Source: Macrostomum hystrix (taxonomy: Eukaryota; Animalia; Platyhelminthes). Taken from it: a DNA stretch of 64,000 nucleotides. Location: the NCBI GenBank assembly GCA_950097015.1, contig CATNEN010000007.1, positions 620,001 to 684,000 on the forward strand, in the 5' to 3' direction. The notes beneath the pieces were generated by a model that was not told the origin of the DNA, did no database searches, and was given only the letters and a program-made list of their open reading frames with translations. This document shows positions 13,693-25,221 of the stretch, one piece after another. The stretch's first letter is position 1. Every line of letters begins with the position of its first letter. The translations under genes and the position numbers were made by a program.

Positions 13693-16600
13693 CTAGGACG
13701 CCTGGTTCTCGAATCGCACATAGATGCTGGCCACGTATGACATGACGGAATTCCAGTCAGGCCTCTCCACTGACACCATGTCCTCCAGGCTCAGCGTGGT
13801 TGGAATATTGGCGGACTCGGCCGCCTTGAAGGCCACCTGGAAATTTCGTCGCTTGTCCTCCGGCGTGAGCTGGTCGTATGGCACCAGATGAGGCAGGTAG
13901 CAGTGCAACAAGCCGCACATGGCCATGCCGTCATTCCAGGAAGTGGAGAAGTTGGTCACATCAATGTGCGGATAGCCGGCAAGGCGGTTCTGGCACCAGC
14001 GCAGCAGGCCGTTCCTTTTCGAGCCGCCGTGTCGCTTGGCCAGCTCGGTCAGCGGATCTGCGGGAGCCGACGATGACACGGGAGCGACAGGGCCGGCAGC
14101 TGCAGATGAAGCTGTAGGAGCCGGGGATGGCCGCAGCTGCGGCTGCTGCTGCTGCTGTTGAAGCAAAAGCGGCGCCGACGGAGGCGGCGGGGTGGAGTCG
14201 TGCGACGACAAAGACGGAGTGACCTCGTCGAGAATGGACTCCATGGCGGCGGTGGACATGTTGGGGTAGGAGCAGCGAATCAGGGCCGACTGGGCCAGCG
14301 AGTGACCGCGGGACAGGGGGTGGCGCAGCTGCTGCTGCTGTTGCTCTGACTGACCCTGCTGCGGCTGCTGCTGCTGTTGCTGTTCTAGCTGTTGCTGCTC
14401 CAACGGTACGGTGGGCACGCTGGTGCGACGGGTTTTCACCTGCAGGAATGTTTTTCTTTATATTTACTAATTGTAAAACTAATCGAATCACGACTCAACT
14501 GATCCTCAATCATGACCTAAAAACGATTCTAAACCATGACCTAAAACTGATCCTTAATCATGACCTAAAACTGATCCTTAATCATGACCTAAAACTGATC
14601 CTTAATCATGACCTAAAACTGATCCTTGATCATGACCTAAAACTGATCCTTAATCATGACCTAAAACTGATCCTTAATCATGACCTAAAACTGATCCTAA
14701 TTCATGACCTAAAACTGATCCTTAATCATGACCTAAAACTGATCCTAATTCATGACCTAAAACTGATCCTTAATCATGACCTAAAACCGATCCTAATTCA
14801 TGACCTAAAAATGTTTCTAAACCATGACCTAAAACTGATCCTTAATCATGACCTAAAACTGATCCTCAATCGTGATCTAAAACTGATCCTAAATGACACC
14901 TAACCAGATTGAACCAGATGTAGCAGCTATTGCACAAAGACTATGTACAGCTGTTTAGTCCATGGACTTGGGTAGCCGCCGTACCCACCCAAATTTTCAC
15001 CAATTCTTCAGCTTGATGAACTCAAGCCATTGGGGAAACCAGTATCATGCTCAAGCTCTTAAATCTCGTCCTTAGGCTGGGAATCGAACTCCTGACCCCT
15101 GTTAAAGCTTAAACACCTAAAAATGGATTCTAAATCGCAACCTAAAGACAGGCATCGCGGTGCACTGACCGTTTCGGCCACAGGAATGCCTGCAGCTGGC
15201 GGGCTGTCCGGACTGGGGCCCCGCTTCACAGTCTCCTCAATGGACTGGATCAGCGATTTGACGTGAGTGGAGGCTGCGGGCCTCTGCTCTAGCCGGCGCA
15301 TCGCCCTCATGTTGGCCAGCTCCTTGTCAACTGTGCTGGCCAACTCTCTGCTAGGAAATTCGCGCTGATGCTGCTGTTGTTGTTGCTGGTGCTGCTGCTG
15401 TTGCTGCTGTTGCAATTGCAGCTGTAACTGGTGCAGCTGGGAGCGAAGGCTCTCGGCCTCGCGCTTGGCGGCTGACAGCTCAACAGCATGACGCCTGGCC
15501 TCGTCCGTGAGCTGGCTGCGCTCCCGGCTCCAGTCGTTTAGCAGCCGCTCCGCTTCTTGCTTCACATCGTCGGCCACCTGCACAGTGCGCAGCAGGTCCT
15601 GCTCGTAGGACCGCCACTCTTCCAGCTCCTGTGCCGCCCGCTGCTCCAAGTCCTGGGGAGCGGCGAGAGTTGTTTGATAATCGACAATGAGCGGTGACCG
15701 ATTATCAATGAGCGATGACCGATTATCAATGAGCGATGACCGATTATCAATGAGCGATGAACGATGATCAATGAGCGATGACTGATTATCAATGAGAGAT
15801 GACCGATTATCAATGAGACATGACTGATTATCAATGAGACATGACTGATTATCAATGAGACATGACTGATTATCAATGAGACATGACTGATTATCAATGA
15901 GAGATGACCGATGATCAATGAGCGATGACCGATTATCAATTAGCAATGACCGATTATCAATGAGCGATGACTGATTATCAATGAGCGATGACCGATTATC
16001 AATGAGCGATGACCGATTATCAATGAGCGATGATCTGTTATCAATGAGAGGTGAAGCGTAATGACCAAACGAAATTCAAGTAGTAAGATAATGACAAAGG
16101 GAAAGTGTAGGAGTGGGGCAATGACCAACTTGAAGACCTAGGAGTGGGGCAATGACCAACTTGAAGACCTTGGAGTGGAGCGATGACCAACTCGAAGAAA
16201 TGCCAGGTAGGCAACTCACAGCCAGCCGAGCCCGCAGACTTTCGCAGGCCGCCTCAGCCGAAGCCAGCTCTGTCTCCAGCTGTCTGGCTCTGTCCGCCTC
16301 GGCCTCGGCAGCCGCCCTGGCGTCAGCGGTGGCAGTCTTCTGGCTGGCGAGTGACTCCGCCAGGCTCTGCCGCTGGCTTAGCACCAGCTCCAGCTCCTGG
16401 GCCTGCCGGGCGAGCTGCTCTTTGAGGCAAGTGGCGGTCTTCTCTGCTGATAGGCGAAGGTCCTGCAGCTGGCCAGTGAGCTGCAAGTTGGCCTCGTCAA
16501 GTCTGCTCAGCTCCTCCTGTGGAATTCAGAAGAGGAGAGGAGAAGATAAGTGAGGATAGGAGAGGACAAATGCGGATTAGTGAGGATAGGAGAGGACAAA

Positions 16601-19600
16601 TGCGGATTAGTGAGGATAGGAGAGGACAAATGAGGATAAGTGAGGATAGGAGAGGAAAAATGAGGAATAGTGAGGATAAGAGAGACAAATGAGGATAAAT
16701 GAGGATAGGAGAGGACAAATGCGGATTAGTGAGGATAGGAGAGGACAAATGAGGATAAGTGAAGACAGGAGAGTATAAATGAGGATTAGTGAGGATAGGG
16801 AATATAAATATGCATAAAATAGTTCAAGATAGGATGGGAGAGGATGAAATACATGCCATTGAGCCGGCAGCCAAGGTGGGAGTCGAGCAGAGCACTCACC
16901 TGAGCCCTGGACAGCTCGCAGGCCAGCTTCTCCTTCTGCTCGAGCATCGACTGCATCTCGCTAGCCGTGCTGACCGCATCGTCGCTATTTAACTCCTTCA
17001 TTCGCTCGAAGTCGGCCTTGGAGCTCTCGTACAGCTGTTTGAAGCGGGCCACCTCGCGCCGCAGGGAATTGCAGCGACCTTCCAGCTCGATGACCAGCCG
17101 GTCCCGCTTCAGACGGTCGATTTCGTCAGACTTGGCCTGGAGGACAGCGGCGGTCATTGTAGGGAGAGGCGCTAGTAAAAGCTACCTACGGCTGTTCAGT
17201 CCATGGACAGGGGAGACGCCACACCGACAGTCAGTTACCACAGCTTATACCCATTTAACAAAATTAAACAAGTCTTGCTAAAGGACGCAAATTATTCCAG
17301 TGGAGTCAAGAATCGAACCCCCGACGACGCTCTGACCAGCCAGTGGTAAAGGCGAACCTCTAAAGGTTGTGTACAACAGTTCAGTCCGCGGACTGGGGAG
17401 CAGCAGCTGTTGCTGGTACGCATTTACTAGTTGGGCAAACTCAAGTACAAGGAAGGTAAAGTGTCTCGCGCATGGACACAAATGCTCCCCTATAGATTCC
17501 TTGATTCCAAAGGTCAAGATTCGAATTCCCGACCTCATGGTAAGACGATTGGACGGGTTTTTACCAAGATAAATATTCGATAAATAAACAAATTACTGTA
17601 CTTAATGACACAATTTGAATCAGGAGATCTCACGATGAAAACTCAATCGTGACCTAAACCCGATCCCAAATAAACTAATACTCAAACAGATCCTAAATCA
17701 TGACCTAAAACTGATCTTAAATCATGACCTAAAACTGATCTTAAATCATGACCTAAAACAGATCCTAAATCATGACCTAAAACTGATCTTAAATCATGAC
17801 CTAAAACTGATCCTAAAACATGACCTAAAACTGATTCAAGCTGCAATCATTAGACGAAAAGCTACAAAGTTTAGGAATTGGGAATATAACTTTGGGCTTA
17901 AGGAACATTGGGTTGCACCCGCCTGACTGTGGTAATCCGGTTTTTATCCGGCTTCGTCCGGTTTCATCCGTTTTTAGGGGGTTTTCCGGATCAAATAGTT
18001 GTTTCACCCGGTTTTGATCCGGTTTCAGTTTCGGGCCAATATTCGGAGTAAAACCGGATCAAACAGTTCTGTCTCGTCACTTTTATCCGGTTTTCATCCG
18101 CTTTTTAATCCGGTTACATAGCCGACTAAATTTGGACAAAAACCGGGATTAAAAACCGGATTAAGATCGGATCAAATAGGTTTTAGGTCCAGATTCTGTC
18201 CGGTTTTTATTCCGTACATTGGACCGTCCAAAAGCGGATGAAATACGGAGCACAAAGCGGAGTATTTAATTGTGAGTGCATGCTTAATTGTAATTGCATA
18301 GAAATAAAATGCTACGGATGACGTCGCTGCTCGGCACTGAGATCTTTGAAGTATCCTAGCGTTCTTCTTTCTCAATTTATGTCTTCTAAATTTGGCTGCT
18401 GAGTGATTATTCGTCAAGAAATGGCCGCTGAAAATGTTTCCGCTTATATCCGCTCATTTGGCCGCTCATTTCAGCGCTCACCATCGAGTGTGATTTGGCC
18501 GCTCACTTTCAAGATTCTAATTAGCTGCTCTCATTAGCTGGCGGCTTCGGATTCGGCTAGCGGCAAATGCGTCCATGACCAAATTTTGGTAATCAATATT
18601 TGCCAACTTATTTAGGCACACCTGCAGATCAGTCCAGTATTTCGAACTCCGATCGTCGCCTGTGGCAGGGTACCTAAATATTTAAATTTCAAATTCTCTA
18701 GCATCATACACGAGTACATCCGCCTCGTGATGAGCATAATCCTGCTGCTCCTGGGACTCAGGCTCCGGCTCCGCTGCATCAACATTAAGAGTAGTCTGAG
18801 TTTTCACTTTTCTAAATCTATAGCATCACAAACTAGTTATTCCTCACGGTCCTCCACCTTCACACACAGGTATATACATACACAGGGGACTCACAGTCCT
18901 CCACCTTCACACACAGGTATTGCCTATTGCCTGCAGCACGCAGGACTGCAACCCCGCCGCCTCGCCGCCATCGCGAACTCTGCCAAATTCATGCGGCAGT
19001 AGCACAGCTCAACGGTACACGTTGGATGACTACAACAGGCTGCCCGATGAGGCCCCTCCATCTTACACGTCATGCCGCCGTTACGATAGACAACGACTAC
19101 CTGCCCAGTGCTGCTCCGATTGTGCAGCCTGGTATGCGGCTCTGCCTGCTGAGGAGCGAGAGAAGCGGCTACAGGCCAACGGACGGCACCGTCATCGCCC
19201 AGTAGTGCAGGCTGCGGAACTTTTTTGTAATCGAAATGCCGTCGAGCCCGCCGCCTGCTCCACTGGAGCACATGAAAGTGGGGAAGCGCAGACGACGACC
19301 GCTGCGAGATCTTTCCGTTTTGTCAGATCGCAATGACGCCCCCGAGAAGTGCGCGTCTACTCTGACGAAGGACCGTTAGAATACCTGATAATAGAACATA
19401 ACATAACATACCTGACCGGGATTCCAATCCAAGAGTGGGAAGTTTCTACTGTACTTCAGTAATCATTAGTTTGATTGCGGATCTCACTATCCTCACTAAT
19501 CCGCATTTGTCCTCTCCTATCCTCATTTATCCTCATTTATCCTCATTTGTCCTCTCTTATCCTCACTAATCCTCATTTGTCCTCTCCTATCCTCACTTAT

Positions 19601-22600
19601 CCTCATTTGTCCTCTCCTATCCTCACTAATCCGCATTTGATTCATTAGTTTCGGGTTAACTGCTGTTAGGTTTGTACTGCTGTTAGGGTTGTACTGCTGC
19701 TAGGGTTGTACTGCTGTTAGGGTTGTACTGCTGTTAGGGTTGTACTGCTGTTAGGGTTGTACTGCTGTTAGGGTTGTACTGCTGTTAGGGTTGTACTGCT
19801 GTTAGGGTTGTACTGCTGTTAGGGTTGTACTGCTGTTAGGGTTGTACTGCTGTTAGGGTTGTACTGCTGTTAGCCTCTGGAAGTCTGAAGATCCACCAGT
19901 TCGAACCGCCAGTCTGGCAGTTCCGCTGAAGCGATTGACAGCTAAGGACGACAATCGTCCGCCTGTGGAGATGCTACCCTACAAAGTGGAGACCGTCATA
20001 CGATACTTTCTGTTTCAGTACGACGAGTTCCACGAAAAGCCGCAGGTGTTGTACACCGGCGTGACGACATCAGCGGCCATTATTGTCGGCGTTTCTCGTG
20101 GGTCCCCTACGCCCGTTTAACTGGGCAGCCACGTCTCGATAGTAACAGCTAAAACCAACAAGTCAAGTGCGAAGCGCTATTTTGGCAAGCTGGTGCGTCG
20201 GCCATTCGGCACTAAAGCAGAGGCTTCAGGGGCCGCGAACCTCACCAATGTGCACGCTCCGACCGTCGAGCTGCCACGAGGTTGCGCTTCGTGCAAGGGC
20301 CTATTGTTGGAGTTGCAACGGTCTAAGACCCTCAGTGACGCTCAAGGTGAGTATGCAGAGTCTTCCCCGCGGATCGAACTTACGTTCTTCGCGTTTAGTA
20401 ATATTTGGGATGCACGTGCTTCTATGGTTCGATTCCCTCACCAAAATTTTGCAGGCTCCGATCTTCGATCCGCCCGGTCCACGGAAGCCCAGCTGCGTGA
20501 GGAGGTTAGGGCACTTCAGCAGAAGCTTCTTGTGTCCCAAAAGATGGAGGTGAGACTCATGCGCCAGTTAGAGGTCGAGCAGGCAAAGTCCTGCAACCTG
20601 GAGCGCAACGCTAAGGCAGCGAATGCGTTGCTAGTACGGGCATGTGACTTCCTAGTAGTAGGCGCTGCAGTGACCTCAGCTGCTTCGGGGGCAGATAGCT
20701 CGACAGAAGACGAACGGGTATCGAATCCCGACGTCGAAGACGCCAGCATACCGGAAAACTGCGAATTGTCAGCGTCGCAGACTCGGCAGCTGCTGAATGC
20801 CTGTACAGCACCAAAGCAGGGTCCATCGTCTGCTGGCTCTCTGTCAGTGGGCCTCGTGCCGCTGTCCGACAAGCAAGTGTACATGAAAACTTCGACGCAG
20901 CTCCGAGCTCAACTGGAGAGCCGACTACGGGACTACGAGTACGTCAAAGTGATGCAGGAGCCCGTTGACCTTGGCGAAGTTGACGAAGCTGGACTCGCCA
21001 AGATGCGCCGATCGGCCAGACTCGCAACGATTAGGGCCCTATTCCGGTCCGTTTTTACGGACGGCGAGTTAGCCAATAGTAGCCTGTCGGGCCGGTGGGC
21101 CTCTGGCTATGTGTCGCTGCCCGCAAATGCCGGCAAGCTGGCAGCAGCCAAGCAGTGGCTTGCTAACGCCAGTATTAAGTACAGTGAACTCGAGCTGCAG
21201 CGCGCGTTCACACGATGCGGTGAAACTGCACGACATCGACTGGGGCTGCCAAAACGCATAAGGAGCAAGGCACAGTCGAGTGGCGAAGCTGCCAAGCCAC
21301 GTCGCGATATGGGCGGGGCAGATAGTACTATTCGTATTCGGCTTCGTGCTGGGCCTTCGGCTGTGCTGCCGGCTGCCAAGCAAGTAACAGGTTCACGCAT
21401 CGTCAACGAAGATTCCTCCGAGTCGGACGGCTCCCCCGAAAGTGTCGCGTTCCGCGAAGCCAGGCAGGTGGGTAATTATACTTGTTACTTAAGCATTGAA
21501 ATACTAGGTAACAAGTAATGCATTTATAATTATATTTAAATTTAAATCAGGCCGAGACCGCACAGCCCAGGACGGATAATTCTGTACGAAATATCGACGA
21601 TCTGGAGATCGCTCCAGACATGCTCCTCGCCGTACTGCATGAGTAGGTGGAACTTCATAAAATCATGTAATTGATCGGGCCTGTCATAAAAAGGCGTCGC
21701 CCTAGACTTTGTCAGTCAACAGTAAAACGCAGTGAAAAGGATTTTCTGTGGTTTCCATTGCGGAACGATTGCGGATCGAGTATGACAAATGGAATTTCAG
21801 TTGCAAATATTTGTCTAAATATATTTATTGGAGCTTGGGTTGATCGTTTTGAGATTGGGGTAGAGAGGTTGAGATTGAGATCGAGATTATGGGGATGAGA
21901 TTGGGGATACCGAAGGCATTGCCTTACCTTAAGTAACGTACGATACCTTGAACGCATTTTTCTTTTCGAATTAATTAATAATTCACACGTACCGGGTGCT
22001 ACATATAATTGCTGCCACAAAACGTGTTGCCACATTTTTCTTACCATTCTATATATCCTTTTTGCAACCCATTTTTTGCACCTCAATTAAACGTCGTAAA
22101 CAACATTTTTTAAATACAATGGCCATATATTCTGTTTCTGGCGAGTTGACGCCGTCACTTTTTTGTTATGGGACCAGCCACTTTCGGCACAATCTGCAGT
22201 ATAAACTGTCCAATGCTGTCTCCTGTATTTATTTTCAATTTATTTACTGTCAATACGGTAGCACTGCCTTTGATGCACAGTTTTGTTGCAGGGTCCAAAA
22301 TTTAGGACAGCATACTTCGGCAAATGCTTCATATTTGCATTTATCTGCAGTTGTGAATGGGCGTCGGCTTAATTATACTTGTTACTTAAGTATTGAAATA
22401 CTAGGTAACAAGTAATGCATTTATAATTATATTTAAATTTAAATTATACACTTAAGTTTAACTTTGAATTGATGCACACTATGCACTACGTATATCCGGA
22501 TTTTCATCCGCTTTCTCGTCCGGTTAAAGTGTACGAACATGTCATCCGTTTAGATCCGGAATTTCATCCGCTTTCTCGTCCGGTTAAAGTGTACGTACAT

Positions 22601-25120
22601 TTAATCCGGTTTTAGTCCGGAAATTGCTCCGCCTCGTCATCCGGCCTACTCCGGATGGCAACCGGGTGAGATTCCGGAGAAACCCCGGATTCTCTTCCGG
22701 ATGAAGGGGTCATATTATGAAGCTTTGGTCCGGTTTGTAAACTTCTCATCCGGCATTCATCCGGATTTTTACATGTAAACATGTGCACCGGATGAAACTT
22801 CGGATGATGGACCGGTTAACCGGATTACCACAGCCAGGCGGGCAGCTGTTTCAGTAGGCAAAAATTTCTATCTTAGGTCTAATCTGGCACCTGCTGCTTG
22901 AGATCGGATAGCTGAGCATGCTGCTGCTGCAGCTGCTCTCTCAGCCCGCTGTTGACCGCCTCGAACTGCCTCTCGGACTCAAGGCGAGCGTTGGCGGCCT
23001 CGGCTTTCTCAGCGCTGGCCAGGTCCAGCAGCTCTAGCAGCTGGCGCTCCCGATCGGCCAGAATGCCACCGCCTGGGCGGCGTCGAACATCCGAGGTCAG
23101 CAGCGACTTCAGCGACTCCACGGTGCGACGGCTGCGATCGAGGCTCTCGGTCTGGTGGTAGAGGGACTCCAGGAGCACCTGGGAGGAGGGAGGAAATGGT
23201 TGGAGGAATAATTTAAACCTGAAGCTTTGAGGGGAAATCTGTGCATTAACAAGACAAAGACCAATTTTTATTTTTCTGCATCTCCCAAAATTTCCGCTAA
23301 TCCCCATGAAAATCCGGAACACGGGCAGTCTCTAACTAGAATGTTGCAATCGTTAACTAGAATGTTGCAATCTCTAACTAGAATGCTGCAGTCTCTAACT
23401 AGAATGTTGCAATCTCTAACTAGAATGCTGCAGTCTCTAACTAGAATGCTGCAGTCTCAAACTAGAATGTTGCAATCTCTAACTAGAATGCTGCAGTCTC
23501 TAACTAGAATGTTGCAATCTCTAACTAGAATGTTGCAATCTCTAACTAGAATGTTGCAATCTCTAACTAGAATGTTGCAATCTCTAACTAGAATGTTGCA
23601 ATCTTTAACTAGAATGTTGCAGTCTCTAACTAGAATGTTACAATCTCTAACTAGAATGTTGCAATCTCTAACTAGAATGTTGCAATCTCTAACTAGAATG
23701 TTGCAATCTTTAATTAGAATGTTGTAATCTTTAACTAGAATGTTGCAATTTCTAACTATAATTATAGAATGCTGCAGTCTCTAACTAGAATGTTGCAGTC
23801 TCTAACTAGAATGCTGCAGTCTCTAACTAGAATGTTACAATCTCTAACTAGAATGTTGCAATCTCTAACTAGAATGTTGCAATCTCTAACTAGAATGTTG
23901 CAATCTTTAATTAGAATGTTGTAATATTTAACTAGAATGTTGCAATTTCTAACTGTAATTATAGAATGCTGCAGTCTCTAACTAGAATGTTGCAGTCTCG
24001 AACTAGAATGCTGCAGTCTCGAACTAGAATGCTGCAGTCTCTAACTAGAATGCTGCAGTCTCTAACTAGAATGCTGCAGTCTCGAACTAGAATGCTGCAG
24101 TCAAGGACCATTATTAAAGCAAGCGCCCCTCACCTGCTTCTCGCCCATGAGGTTCTCGTTCTCGTCAGTGAGGTGGGTGTTCCTCAGCTGCAGCTCGGCC
24201 AGCTCCAGGAGGGTCGCCTGCAGCTCCTCCGTGGCGCTGAAATTGGCCTCCTCCATCTGGGCCAGCCGCTGCCGCATCTGCTGCTCGGCTGTCTCAACGG
24301 CTCCATCGTCGTTGGACGTTACAGCCGACGTTGCCGCCGCGGCTGCCGCAGCTGCAGCTGCTCGTCGAAGCCGCTGGCACTCGGACTCCAGCTGAGCTAG
24401 CCGAACCTCCTTTGTAGCCGCCTCGGTTCTGGACGCCTCTAGCTCCATCCTCAGCCGCTCGGCCTCGGCCTTCCTGCCGGCCGCGCCGCCAGCGGCTCTG
24501 CCGATGCTCTTGTCTCGCTCCAGGCTGCAGGCAGGCGGCTCCGGCGTGGAGGCCGCGATGGCTCCGTCGGAGGCGGCCACGGCGTCACCGGCCACGACCG
24601 ATTCGGAATTGCCGCTGACAATGACGGAGCCGATGGTGACCGCAGGCTGGCCGCCCGCAGAGTTGGTGGAAGGCAGGGAGACCCCGCTAGCCAGCAGTGC
24701 CAGCGACATGGCAGGCGCGATGCCCTGAGTAGAGGAGGACTTCTTCATCTGATGGCCGCCGTTACCACCGCGGCCGCTGTTAGACGCGGACCTGGCGCTG
24801 CCAGTCTGCCTGACGCCCAGATTTTCTTGGCTTCGCGACACCGGCGCCGCGGGCGACTCCGCATTGGCGTCGGCAGCGGCTACGACTGGATCCGAAGCGG
24901 TTGGCAGGGTGGCTCGCTTCTGGCGACCACCGCCCTGGTGACGCTGCTGCTGCTGCTGCTGCTGAGGGCCAGTTGAGGCAGACGGAACAGAAGCTGATGA
25001 CGGATCACTGGGCGTCTTGGCGTGACTGTTGGCGTTGCTGTTGGCCGAGGCCAGGGGAGTTCGCTGGACGGCCTCGGCCTTGCGACCGCCGCTGCCGTTG
25101 AGCTTCTTGTCCTCCCGCAT
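13693..25120 (-). CDS. SPECC1L: Cytospin (SPECC1/SPECC1L-like) coiled-coil protein with C-terminal type-3 CH domain; exons 25120-24134, 23178-22891, 17136-16900, 16516-16220, 15652-15170, 14439-13693; ~1010 aa
   Basis: C-terminal GGSKRNGLLRWCQ..IDVTNFSTSWNDGMAMCGLLH..DKRRNFQVAFKAAES..ERPDWNSVMSYVASIY; EENFSATEELQATL-type coiled-coil (EEANFSATEELQATLLEL). Five phase-0 GT-AG introns. The start ATG (25120) follows a splice acceptor at 25132-25131. Confidence 0.88.
14500..14895. repeat. 24-bp minisatellite CATGACCTAAAACTGATCCTTAAT (SPECC1 intron 5); same family at 17685-17836
   Basis: About 15 tandem copies abutting the acceptor region. Confidence 0.92.
14925..15110 (-). mobile_element. tRNA-derived SINE family B, diverged copy
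   Basis: Reverse B-box (GGGAATCGAAC) and shared body AGTCCATGGACT...ACAGCTGTAC matching 29004-29310. Confidence 0.65.
15690..16035. repeat. 21-bp minisatellite TCAATGAGCGATGACCGATTA (SPECC1 intron 4)
   Basis: About 16 tandem copies. Confidence 0.93.
16530..16800. repeat. 30-bp minisatellite GAGGATAGGAGAGGACAAATGCGGATTAGT (SPECC1 intron 3)
   Basis: About 9 copies. An inverted copy of the same unit lies at 19482-19637. Confidence 0.9.
17175..17535 (-). mobile_element. Two tandem diverged copies of SINE family B (~17175-17360 and ~17375-17535)
   Basis: Each has the CAGTCC(AT/GC)GGAC palindrome, a GTCT(T/C)GC..GGAC(A/G)C core and a reverse B-box-like motif (AATCGAACCC / TTCGAATTCCC). Confidence 0.65.
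18937..19226 (+). CDS. Exon encoding a CtIP/Sae2 C-terminal-like (CxxC-RHR) module inside the transposon; ORF otherwise runs to a stop at 19336
   Basis: RQRLPAQCCSDCAAWYAALPAEEREKRLQANGRHRHR aligns without gaps to recalled human CtIP [37 protein letters not shown]. Acceptor CTGCAG ends at 18936; candidate donor GTAATC at 19227. Confidence 0.75.
19482..19872. repeat. Two arrays inside the transposon: ~30-bp CCTCACTAATCCGCATTTGTCCTCTCCTAT (19482-19637) and 17-bp GGGTTGTACTGCTGTTA (19660-19872)
   Basis: Direct tandem copies, located in the predicted intron between the CtIP-like and BEN-like exons. Confidence 0.9.
19942..21646 (+). CDS. Transposon-encoded coiled-coil + BEN-like DNA-binding protein; exons 19942-20097, 20149-20346, 20455-21467, 21551-21646
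   Basis: Coiled coil (EAQLREEVRALQQKLL...ERNAK) and BEN-like segment TIRALFRSVFTDGELANSSLSGR..G..LP...KLAAAKQWL...ELQRAFTRCGETARHR. GT-AG introns of phase 1, 1, 0 keep one frame. Confidence 0.7.
23325..24100. repeat. 21-bp minisatellite ACTAGAATG(T/C)TGCA(A/G)TCTCTA (SPECC1 intron 1)
   Basis: About 35 tandem copies filling most of the intron. Confidence 0.95.
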
Positions 25121-25221
25121 GCCCGCACCGCTGCGGATAAATGGCATTGCATTAGTGGCATTTCGCAGCGAGAGTCAGGATTTCTGTCAGCTGAATAACC
25201 ATCTGCGTATACCTAATGAGA

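Follow-up and report, generated by a model that had tools for sequence, protein, structure and literature searches.

A CtIP/Sae2 tail and a separate second gene within a non-autonomous DNA transposon copy of Macrostomum hystrix

We analysed a 64,000-nucleotide (nt) stretch of the flatworm Macrostomum hystrix (GenBank assembly GCA_950097015.1, contig CATNEN010000007.1, positions 620,001 to 684,000, forward strand), hereafter called the window. Positions 17918-22842 hold a 4.9-kb copy of a cut-and-paste DNA transposon, which is non-autonomous and bounded by terminal inverted repeats (TIRs) and a target site duplication (TSD). This copy probably carries two separate cargo genes, a frameshifted tail of CtIP/Sae2 (gene 1) and an intact second gene downstream of it (gene 2), and would be mobilised in trans. 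An original prediction, made from the letters of the window, had spliced the tail to a coiled-coil protein with a BEN DNA-binding domain. The spliced CtIP-BEN fusion does not hold, and the locus represents a deletion derivative that has decayed. The literature yielded no paper on a CtIP/Sae2 tail as transposon cargo or on BEN-type cargo in such elements. The window is eukaryotic in character, with short GT/AG introns and many minisatellites, and the nearest outside match of the CtIP-tail region was found in Macrostomum lignano.

Homology of gene 1 with the CtIP/Sae2 tail

Homologues of gene 1 were sought with phmmer, run exhaustively against a library of 1.84 billion representative proteins. 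The query was the open reading frame (ORF) at 18920-19333, which comprises 138 amino acids (aa) in the frame of the original prediction (frame A; the +1 frame is called frame B). The peptide RQRLPAQCCSDCAAWYAALPAEEREKRLQANGRHRHR, from which the likeness to CtIP had been claimed, is indeed encoded there. Three matches were obtained. P0001, a 395-aa CtIP-like protein of M. lignano, matched with an E-value of 1.3e-9 and 48% identity. P0002, a 106-aa canonical CtIP tail from the Logan contig ERR14042398_77860, matched with an E-value of 3.8e-5, and with 2e-13 in a pairwise BLASTP comparison. The third match, P0003, is a tandem-repeat protein and was discounted as spurious.

We scored these proteins on the Pfam SAE2 model (PF08573), whose cutoff is 19.8 bits; Pfam matches were sought to E<=10 throughout. 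P0002 scored 28.2 bits, and its sequence (CCFSCEKYY...LPAEELEKKL...SRHR...PSTPEHFWELDFP) is that of a textbook CtIP tail. The M. lignano tail stayed below the cutoff at 13-14 bits. As P0001 reached just 14.3 bits, the whole Macrostomum lineage is divergent in this domain. The CtIP likeness of the element peptide is genuine by transitive homology, through P0001 and the SAE2-passing P0002, and the sequence comparisons point to a true, distant member of the CtIP/Sae2 tail family.

The motifs of the three sequences follow the same order: CSDC and GRHRHR in the element (frame A), CFSC and SRHR in P0002, and CPDC and GRHR in P0001. When an X was placed at the frame break described below, the element peptide was colinear with both proteins, with 61 of 111 residues identical to P0001 and 33 of 97 identical to P0002. 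Like the C-terminal domain of CtIP/Sae2/Ctp1, the element peptide has the CxxC, an acidic LPAEE-EK-L stretch, the RHR and NF(F/W)-x3-(F/M)P at the very C-terminus, and the homologous reading, which ends at the stop codon 19377-19379, puts the domain at the C-terminus of the protein. Unlike full-length CtIP/Sae2, the element has the tail only, about 120 residues without the N-terminal coiled-coil/tetramerisation region; a tblastn search with P0001 found the tail alone in the window. It further differs from CtIP/Sae2/Ctp1 in lacking the TP (CDK) site before NFF, in being frameshifted and transposon-borne, and in going undetected by the Pfam model. A protein search for CtIP-tail homologues with the tail of P0001 returned P0001 itself and nothing else, and sequence searches of the PDB with the CtIP tail and the BEN-like part of gene 2 gave nothing useful.

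The original prediction had noted the loss of the CDK site and read it as a possible uncoupling of the element protein from the cell cycle. The site is absent, as the element reads PVVQA where the canonical P0002 reads PSTPEHFW. However, the host protein P0001 reads PPVQAP(NFF) and is also without the TP. Since the site is missing in the host protein too, its loss says nothing special about the element, and the element-specific uncoupling falls away.

Frameshift in gene 1 and the proposed splice fusion

P0001 aligned with gene 1 in two frames. In frame A, 19010-19228 aligned with residues 280-358 of P0001 (49% identity), the homologous match ending at about 19213. In frame B, 19218-19316 (NFFVIEMPSSPPPAPLEHMKVGKRRRRPLRDLS) aligned with residues 355-387 (NFFAIEMPPTPEPAPTQCMKFGKRRHRPLRMLA) with 22 of 33 residues identical (pairwise E-value 6e-13), and the frame B stop codon lies 20 codons past the last aligned block. 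The shift was located at GCGG/AAC. NFFVIEMP (NFF-IEMP), the counterpart of the CtIP motif NFW-x3-FP, is present in frame B from 19218; in this copy it is not in the same frame as the RHR, being in the +1 frame. The loss of the FW motif that the original prediction had described, with AAELF replacing NTPENFW, was a frame artefact. Judged from these alignments, gene 1 is apparently a CtIP tail with its own stop codon, broken here by a 1-nt frameshift and without a start codon in the exon. Gene 1 of this copy is probably dead.

According to the original prediction, one mRNA (18938-19226 joined to 19942-21646) encodes a 583-aa fusion of the CtIP tail with a coiled-coil/BEN protein, which would tether an activator or a mimic of MRN to the repeats of the element itself. 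This five-exon model is open over 1752 nt, it is joined in frame with GT/AG at each border, and its two parts share a strand and are separated by 715 nt. However, exon 1 has no ATG, and the fusion is left without a start codon. P0001 aligns colinearly through the donor at 19227, and the conserved coding sequence continues to the stop codon 19377-19379. Both proposed donors (19227 and 19278) lie within conserved frame B coding sequence, which is 67% identical to at least the last 33 residues of the host protein and is followed by the stop. Therefore, 19227-19379 is coding sequence and not intron. The donor at 19227 had been assigned phase 1; in the conserved frame it is phase 0, and its join to the phase-1 acceptor at 19941 is in frame through the copy-specific frameshift alone. 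Its sequence, GTAATC, is poorer than the gtgagt/gtgggt of the other introns, and where several donors can be chosen from, chance alone should yield a pair that joins in frame. The tail is the protein end in every relative, namely P0001, its longer version P0004 and P0002, and is therefore the last exon of its own gene. We consider the fusion very improbable. Genes 1 and 2 have the same orientation, and the minisatellite-bearing spacer between them is intergenic and not an intron. The two minisatellites that had been taken as intron content do exist (Table 1), within this intergenic spacer.

Alternatively, the frameshift could have arisen as an error in sequencing or assembly. Gene 1 would then stand alone as an intact tail gene, still separate from gene 2, with its start in a small upstream exon, and both accessory proteins would be expressed. 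One shift aside, both frames are open and follow the host protein colinearly as far as a comparable stop. The CtIP-tail exon itself has no ATG, and frame A, open as far back as 18824, contains none; an ATG at 18730 is joinable in frame through the donor 18869/18870, the first donor-like site, to the acceptor 18936/18937, across a 67-nt intron. However, the shift is not in a long homopolymer, and the peptide of the upstream 'exon' is of low complexity and without a homologue. An error of this kind is unlikely in our view.

A 47-nt tandem duplication (18843-18936) lies just upstream of the CtIP-tail exon and doubles the donor-like sequence CACACAG/GTAT.

The CtIP gene of M. lignano and selection on the tail

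P0001 and P0004 are identical over 388 aligned residues and represent one gene on two contigs. In the M. lignano assembly GCA_002269645.1, the products are annotated as 'hypothetical proteins' (BOX15_Mlig004387g1/g2; PAA88737.1, PAA54340.1), and the gene lies in the regions L001:10001-13072 (g2) and L002:10001-13315 (g1), between acetyl-CoA synthetase and EMP24 on both contigs. P0004 has an N-terminal coiled coil, and the gene has three or more exons. Neither TIRs nor ATCCGG clusters were found near it, and no relative of gene 2 was found nearby. As it has no TIR, no ATCCGG clusters and the same neighbours on two contigs, P0001 was rejected as an element-borne copy. BOX15_Mlig004387g1/g2 is likely the host CtIP orthologue of M. 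lignano. The element tail is about 55% identical to it over 110-111 aligned residues and has in common with it the motifs YTL-DYN-LP, NFF-IEMP and MK-GKRR-RPLR and the absence of the TP site. The M. lignano gene differs from the element in its N-terminal coiled coil, its exon number (at least three), its conserved synteny and the absence of TIRs nearby.

We compared the element tail with the host gene over 110 codons. Synonymous divergence (pS) was saturated at 0.79, and nonsynonymous divergence (pN) was 0.31. No blastn match was found between the element and the M. lignano host locus. The tail ORF is broken once only, and it retains the CxxC, the RHR, the NFF-IEMP and the KRR-RPLR box. Because the tail shows a single break and intact motifs at saturated pS, it has been under selection for most of its separate history. 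This selection could have acted in the lineage of the element or, prior to capture, in another host. The element agrees with the canonical tail in keeping LPAEEREK, whereas the host gene has LSPESRRQ; the tail is therefore not a recent copy of the M. lignano gene.

These data also bear on a functionless transduplication of the Pack-CACTA/Pack-MULE type, in which a fragment of the last CtIP exon and another gene were captured by chance and never served the element. Like Pack-CACTA and Pack-MULE elements, the copy is TIR-bounded, has no transposase and carries a piece of a host gene; this piece is the CtIP tail only, with no ATG and with one frameshift. Unlike in those elements, what was captured is a complete functional module, which is open at saturated synonymous divergence from the host gene, with no blastn match to the host locus. 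Neutral decay would have destroyed the ORF and its motifs, and gene 2 still retains an open exon of 337 codons. Such a chance capture is quite improbable.

P0002 is a stand-alone ORF on its contig (L003:111-1801). Its stop codon and the start of a RING-finger ORF overlap, and this ORF is followed by a further RING ORF paralogous to it. The packing of this contig is compact and intron-less, like that of large DNA viruses or other dense genomes. The CtIP tail may occur in free-standing form outside flatworm transposons.

Structure of the transposon copy

The original prediction had proposed a TIR/TSD-bounded element with ATCCGG subterminal repeats, and both features were confirmed (Table 1). A 23-nt pattern from the TIR has just two sites in the window and gave 0 matches in 100 shuffles, and the element termini read CCCGCC...GGCGGG. 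In the 64-kb window, 21 of 28 ATCCGG/CCGGAT hexamers fall in the outer ~350 nt of both ends of the element and 0 within its 4.2-kb middle. At the ends, they occur in both orientations and are grouped into several direct and inverted repeat families. The palindrome ATCCGGAT occurs twice in the right end, at 22494 and 22759. If the element inserted here, the empty site before insertion is predicted to read ...GGGTTGCAGCTGTTTC...

No transposase was found in 17918-22842, and none of the ORFs in the element belongs to a Pfam family. As 18937-21646 is taken up by genes 1 and 2, there is no space for a transposase in the element. Searches of the window with tblastn, blastn and the TIR pattern found no further copies of the element, and just a 30-nt minisatellite recurred at 16545-16799.

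Table 1 Features of the transposon copy in the window. In ctgcag/C and 19941/19942, the slash marks the exon border.
Feature	Position	Strand	Remarks
Left TSD copy, CA	17916-17917		Read from the sequence; pairs with CA at 22843-22844
Left TIR, CCCGCCTGACTGTGGTAATCCGGTT	17918-17942	+	25-nt inverted pair, 96% complementary (24/25) with the right TIR
Left subterminal repeat region	17918-18260		ATCCGG/CCGGAT-type motifs, direct and inverted; 8 hexamer copies
CtIP/Sae2-tail coding exon, frame A (gene 1)	18937-19214	+	Acceptor ctgcag/C; CxxC and RHR motifs
1-nt frameshift site relative to the homologous reading	19212-19218	+	Between QA (frame A) and NFF (frame B); tblastn splits +2/+3
CtIP-tail continuation, frame B (NFFVIEMPSSPPPAPLEHMKVGKRRRRPLRDLS...)	19218-19379	+	Stop codon 19377-19379
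10/30-nt minisatellite	19482-19639		Spacer between genes 1 and 2
17-nt minisatellite	19659-19873		12.6 copies; spacer between genes 1 and 2
Gene 2, first exon	19942-20097	+	Acceptor 19941/19942; first in-frame ATG 19971
Gene 2, second exon	20149-20346	+	AG/GT borders, in frame
Gene 2, main exon	20455-21467	+	337 codons open; helical/coiled-coil stretch, acidic linker, C-terminal helical domain
BEN-like helical domain, candidate	20973-21260	+	Single-sequence AF2 model, 96 aa
Gene 2, proposed last exon, uncertain	21551-21646	+	GT/AG model
Right subterminal repeat region	22480-22842		Includes right TIR 22818-22842; 13 hexamer copies
Right TSD copy, CA	22843-22844		Read from the sequence

Gene 2 and its BEN-like domain

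By its exon structure, gene 2 (19942-21646) is predicted to be a separate, intact gene of about 477 aa, counted from the ATG at 19971. This ATG lies 30 nt past the acceptor, and the frame, open as far upstream as 19857, contains no earlier one. Macrostomum uses spliced-leader trans-splicing, and the acceptor at 19941 may be a trans-splice site. The intron before the proposed last exon consists almost wholly of a 75-nt repeat, and the unspliced reading stops at 21516-21518. Gene 2 was also considered as the N-terminal half of CtIP; this was rejected, as it has no similarity to P0004.

Pfam searches with every exon of gene 2 gave nothing but a sub-threshold match to Mis12. The BEN model (PF10523), to which the original prediction had assigned the downstream protein, had no match at E<=10 with the 337-aa exon or the 96-aa domain, and the BEN-like part had no sequence match in the PDB. 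We modelled the C-terminal part of gene 2 with AlphaFold (AF2) from the single sequence. Both models were helical, with a pLDDT of 69 for a 150-aa piece and a pLDDT of 80.6 and a pTM of 0.70 for the 96-aa piece (20973-21260).

Foldseek searches with these models returned nothing at E<=0.001, trimmed or not, and the E-values of the BEN matches of the trimmed model were above 1. Within these results, BEN had the top probabilities for the 150-aa model (0.47-0.75; Bsg25A, Insv and NACC1) and the top TM for the trimmed model (0.43-0.53, with 17-25% identity; Bsg25A, Insv, NACC1 and BEND6). In a second-look alignment of the Foldseek candidates, BEN chains from five proteins took 7 of the 11 top rows, with Z 4.8-5.9. 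In a wide search independent of Foldseek, BEN scored level with cullin WHB, ENT, FF and further small helical domains, at Z 5-6. The model of the gene 2 domain resembles the BEN proteins Insv, Bsg25A, BANP, BEND6 and NACC1 as a small helical domain with these TM values; it is unlike them in having no Pfam BEN match, in its Foldseek E-values and in its equal Z for the other domains. It is plausible from these models that the C-terminal domain of gene 2 is BEN-like.

Relationship to known transposons and possible function

The short TIRs, a TSD of 2-3 bp and several hundred bases of subterminal repeats in both orientations make the element similar to CACTA/En-Spm and other transposons of the CACTA-Mirage-Chapaev (CMC) group. 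A non-TA 2-bp duplication combined with long, repeat-rich subtermini is a CMC trait. Unlike CACTA elements, the copy ends in CCCGCC and not in CACTA; CCC termini occur in other CMC branches. It is also unlike CMC elements in that no DDE transposase of the CMC type was found in 17918-22842, the likeness being one of the ends alone. In CACTA/En-Spm, a second, non-transposase protein, TNPA, binds the subterminal repeats, and non-autonomous deletion derivatives are common. The element differs from plant CACTA in its accessory genes, which here are a CtIP tail and a coiled-coil/BEN-like protein.

We infer how the copy could be mobilised and what the two proteins could do. If this copy moves at all, a transposase from autonomous relatives would recognise the TIR and the subterminal repeats and move it in trans. 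The CtIP/Sae2 tail stimulates MRE11 endonuclease activity at ends that are blocked or form hairpins, and yeast needs Mre11 and Sae2 to repair the hairpins that Ac/Ds excision leaves. The tail encoded by intact relatives would influence the MRE11-RAD50-dependent processing of excision ends. Gene 2 would play a part like that of TNPA in En/Spm: its protein would oligomerise, bind DNA and hold the repeat-rich ends. The tethering of an MRN activator or mimic to the ATCCGG repeats, as put forward in the original prediction, was pure inference. A broader proposal is that the transposon family keeps its own CtIP/Sae2 tail under selection, for MRE11-RAD50 action on excision ends or hairpins, together with a BEN-like protein that binds ATCCGG(AT), and that this copy retains both for its mobilisation or control in trans. 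We regard this proposal as distinctly unlikely.

If intact relatives express the tail, a mobile element would bring its own piece of the host machinery for DNA-end resection. This would bear on the repair of excision breaks and hairpins, and would provide a natural experiment on a CtIP tail without the oligomerisation domain and the CDK site. The copy described here adds that the tail forms a unit of its own, apart from the downstream gene, that the likely host source gene is found in M. lignano with normal synteny, that the tail stayed open at saturated synonymous divergence, and that both accessory genes were kept while the transposase was lost.

Several points weigh against a non-autonomous transposon copy with two such cargo genes. 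Mobility and superfamily are suggested by the end structure alone, and a 2-bp TSD is weak evidence, as the chance of a match is 1/16. Pfam SAE2 gave no match to the window peptide at E<=10, either with the frame A ORF or with the frame B piece; the original prediction had named this outcome as one that refutes it. The low ratio of nonsynonymous to synonymous substitutions (dN/dS) partly reflects selection on the host branch and not on the element. No homologue of gene 2 was found among 5.8 billion proteins, with candidate lengths of 185-590 aa for the main exon and 83-262 aa for the 150-aa C-terminal part. The borders of the genes and, for gene 2, the start and the last exon are predicted from sequence only. 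The possible assembly error in gene 1, discussed above, belongs among these points. With these points included, we still consider it probable that the element is a non-autonomous copy with a frameshifted CtIP tail and a separate, intact gene 2.

Insertion site and dispersed repeats

Minus-strand coiled-coil ORFs are present on both sides of the element, and the surrounding host gene has a Pfam calponin-homology (CH) domain (E-value 1e-21) on the minus strand. The element lies antisense within an intron of this minus-strand coiled-coil/CH-domain (cytospin-like) host gene. The gene extends over 13693-25147 and encodes a long coiled-coil protein with a terminal CH domain, similar to cytospin/SPECC1L. 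Its introns are crowded with minisatellites, which give rise to long spurious ORFs.

A 30-nt minisatellite of the GATTAGTGAGGATAGGAGAGGACAAATGAG family occurs in the host intron at 16545-16799 and, inverted, within the element at 19482-19639, with 85-98% identity. This minisatellite is an independent dispersed repeat.

An AT-rich unit of 75 nt, which contains a 10-bp hairpin (TACTTGTTAC...GTAACAAGTA), is present at 21473-21547 and at 22370-22444. The two copies share 99% identity and are spaced 897 nt apart; the first occupies the proposed last intron of gene 2, and the second immediately precedes the right subterminal repeats. The two units are separated by 822 nt, the proposed last exon among them, and this segment could have been inserted or duplicated later.

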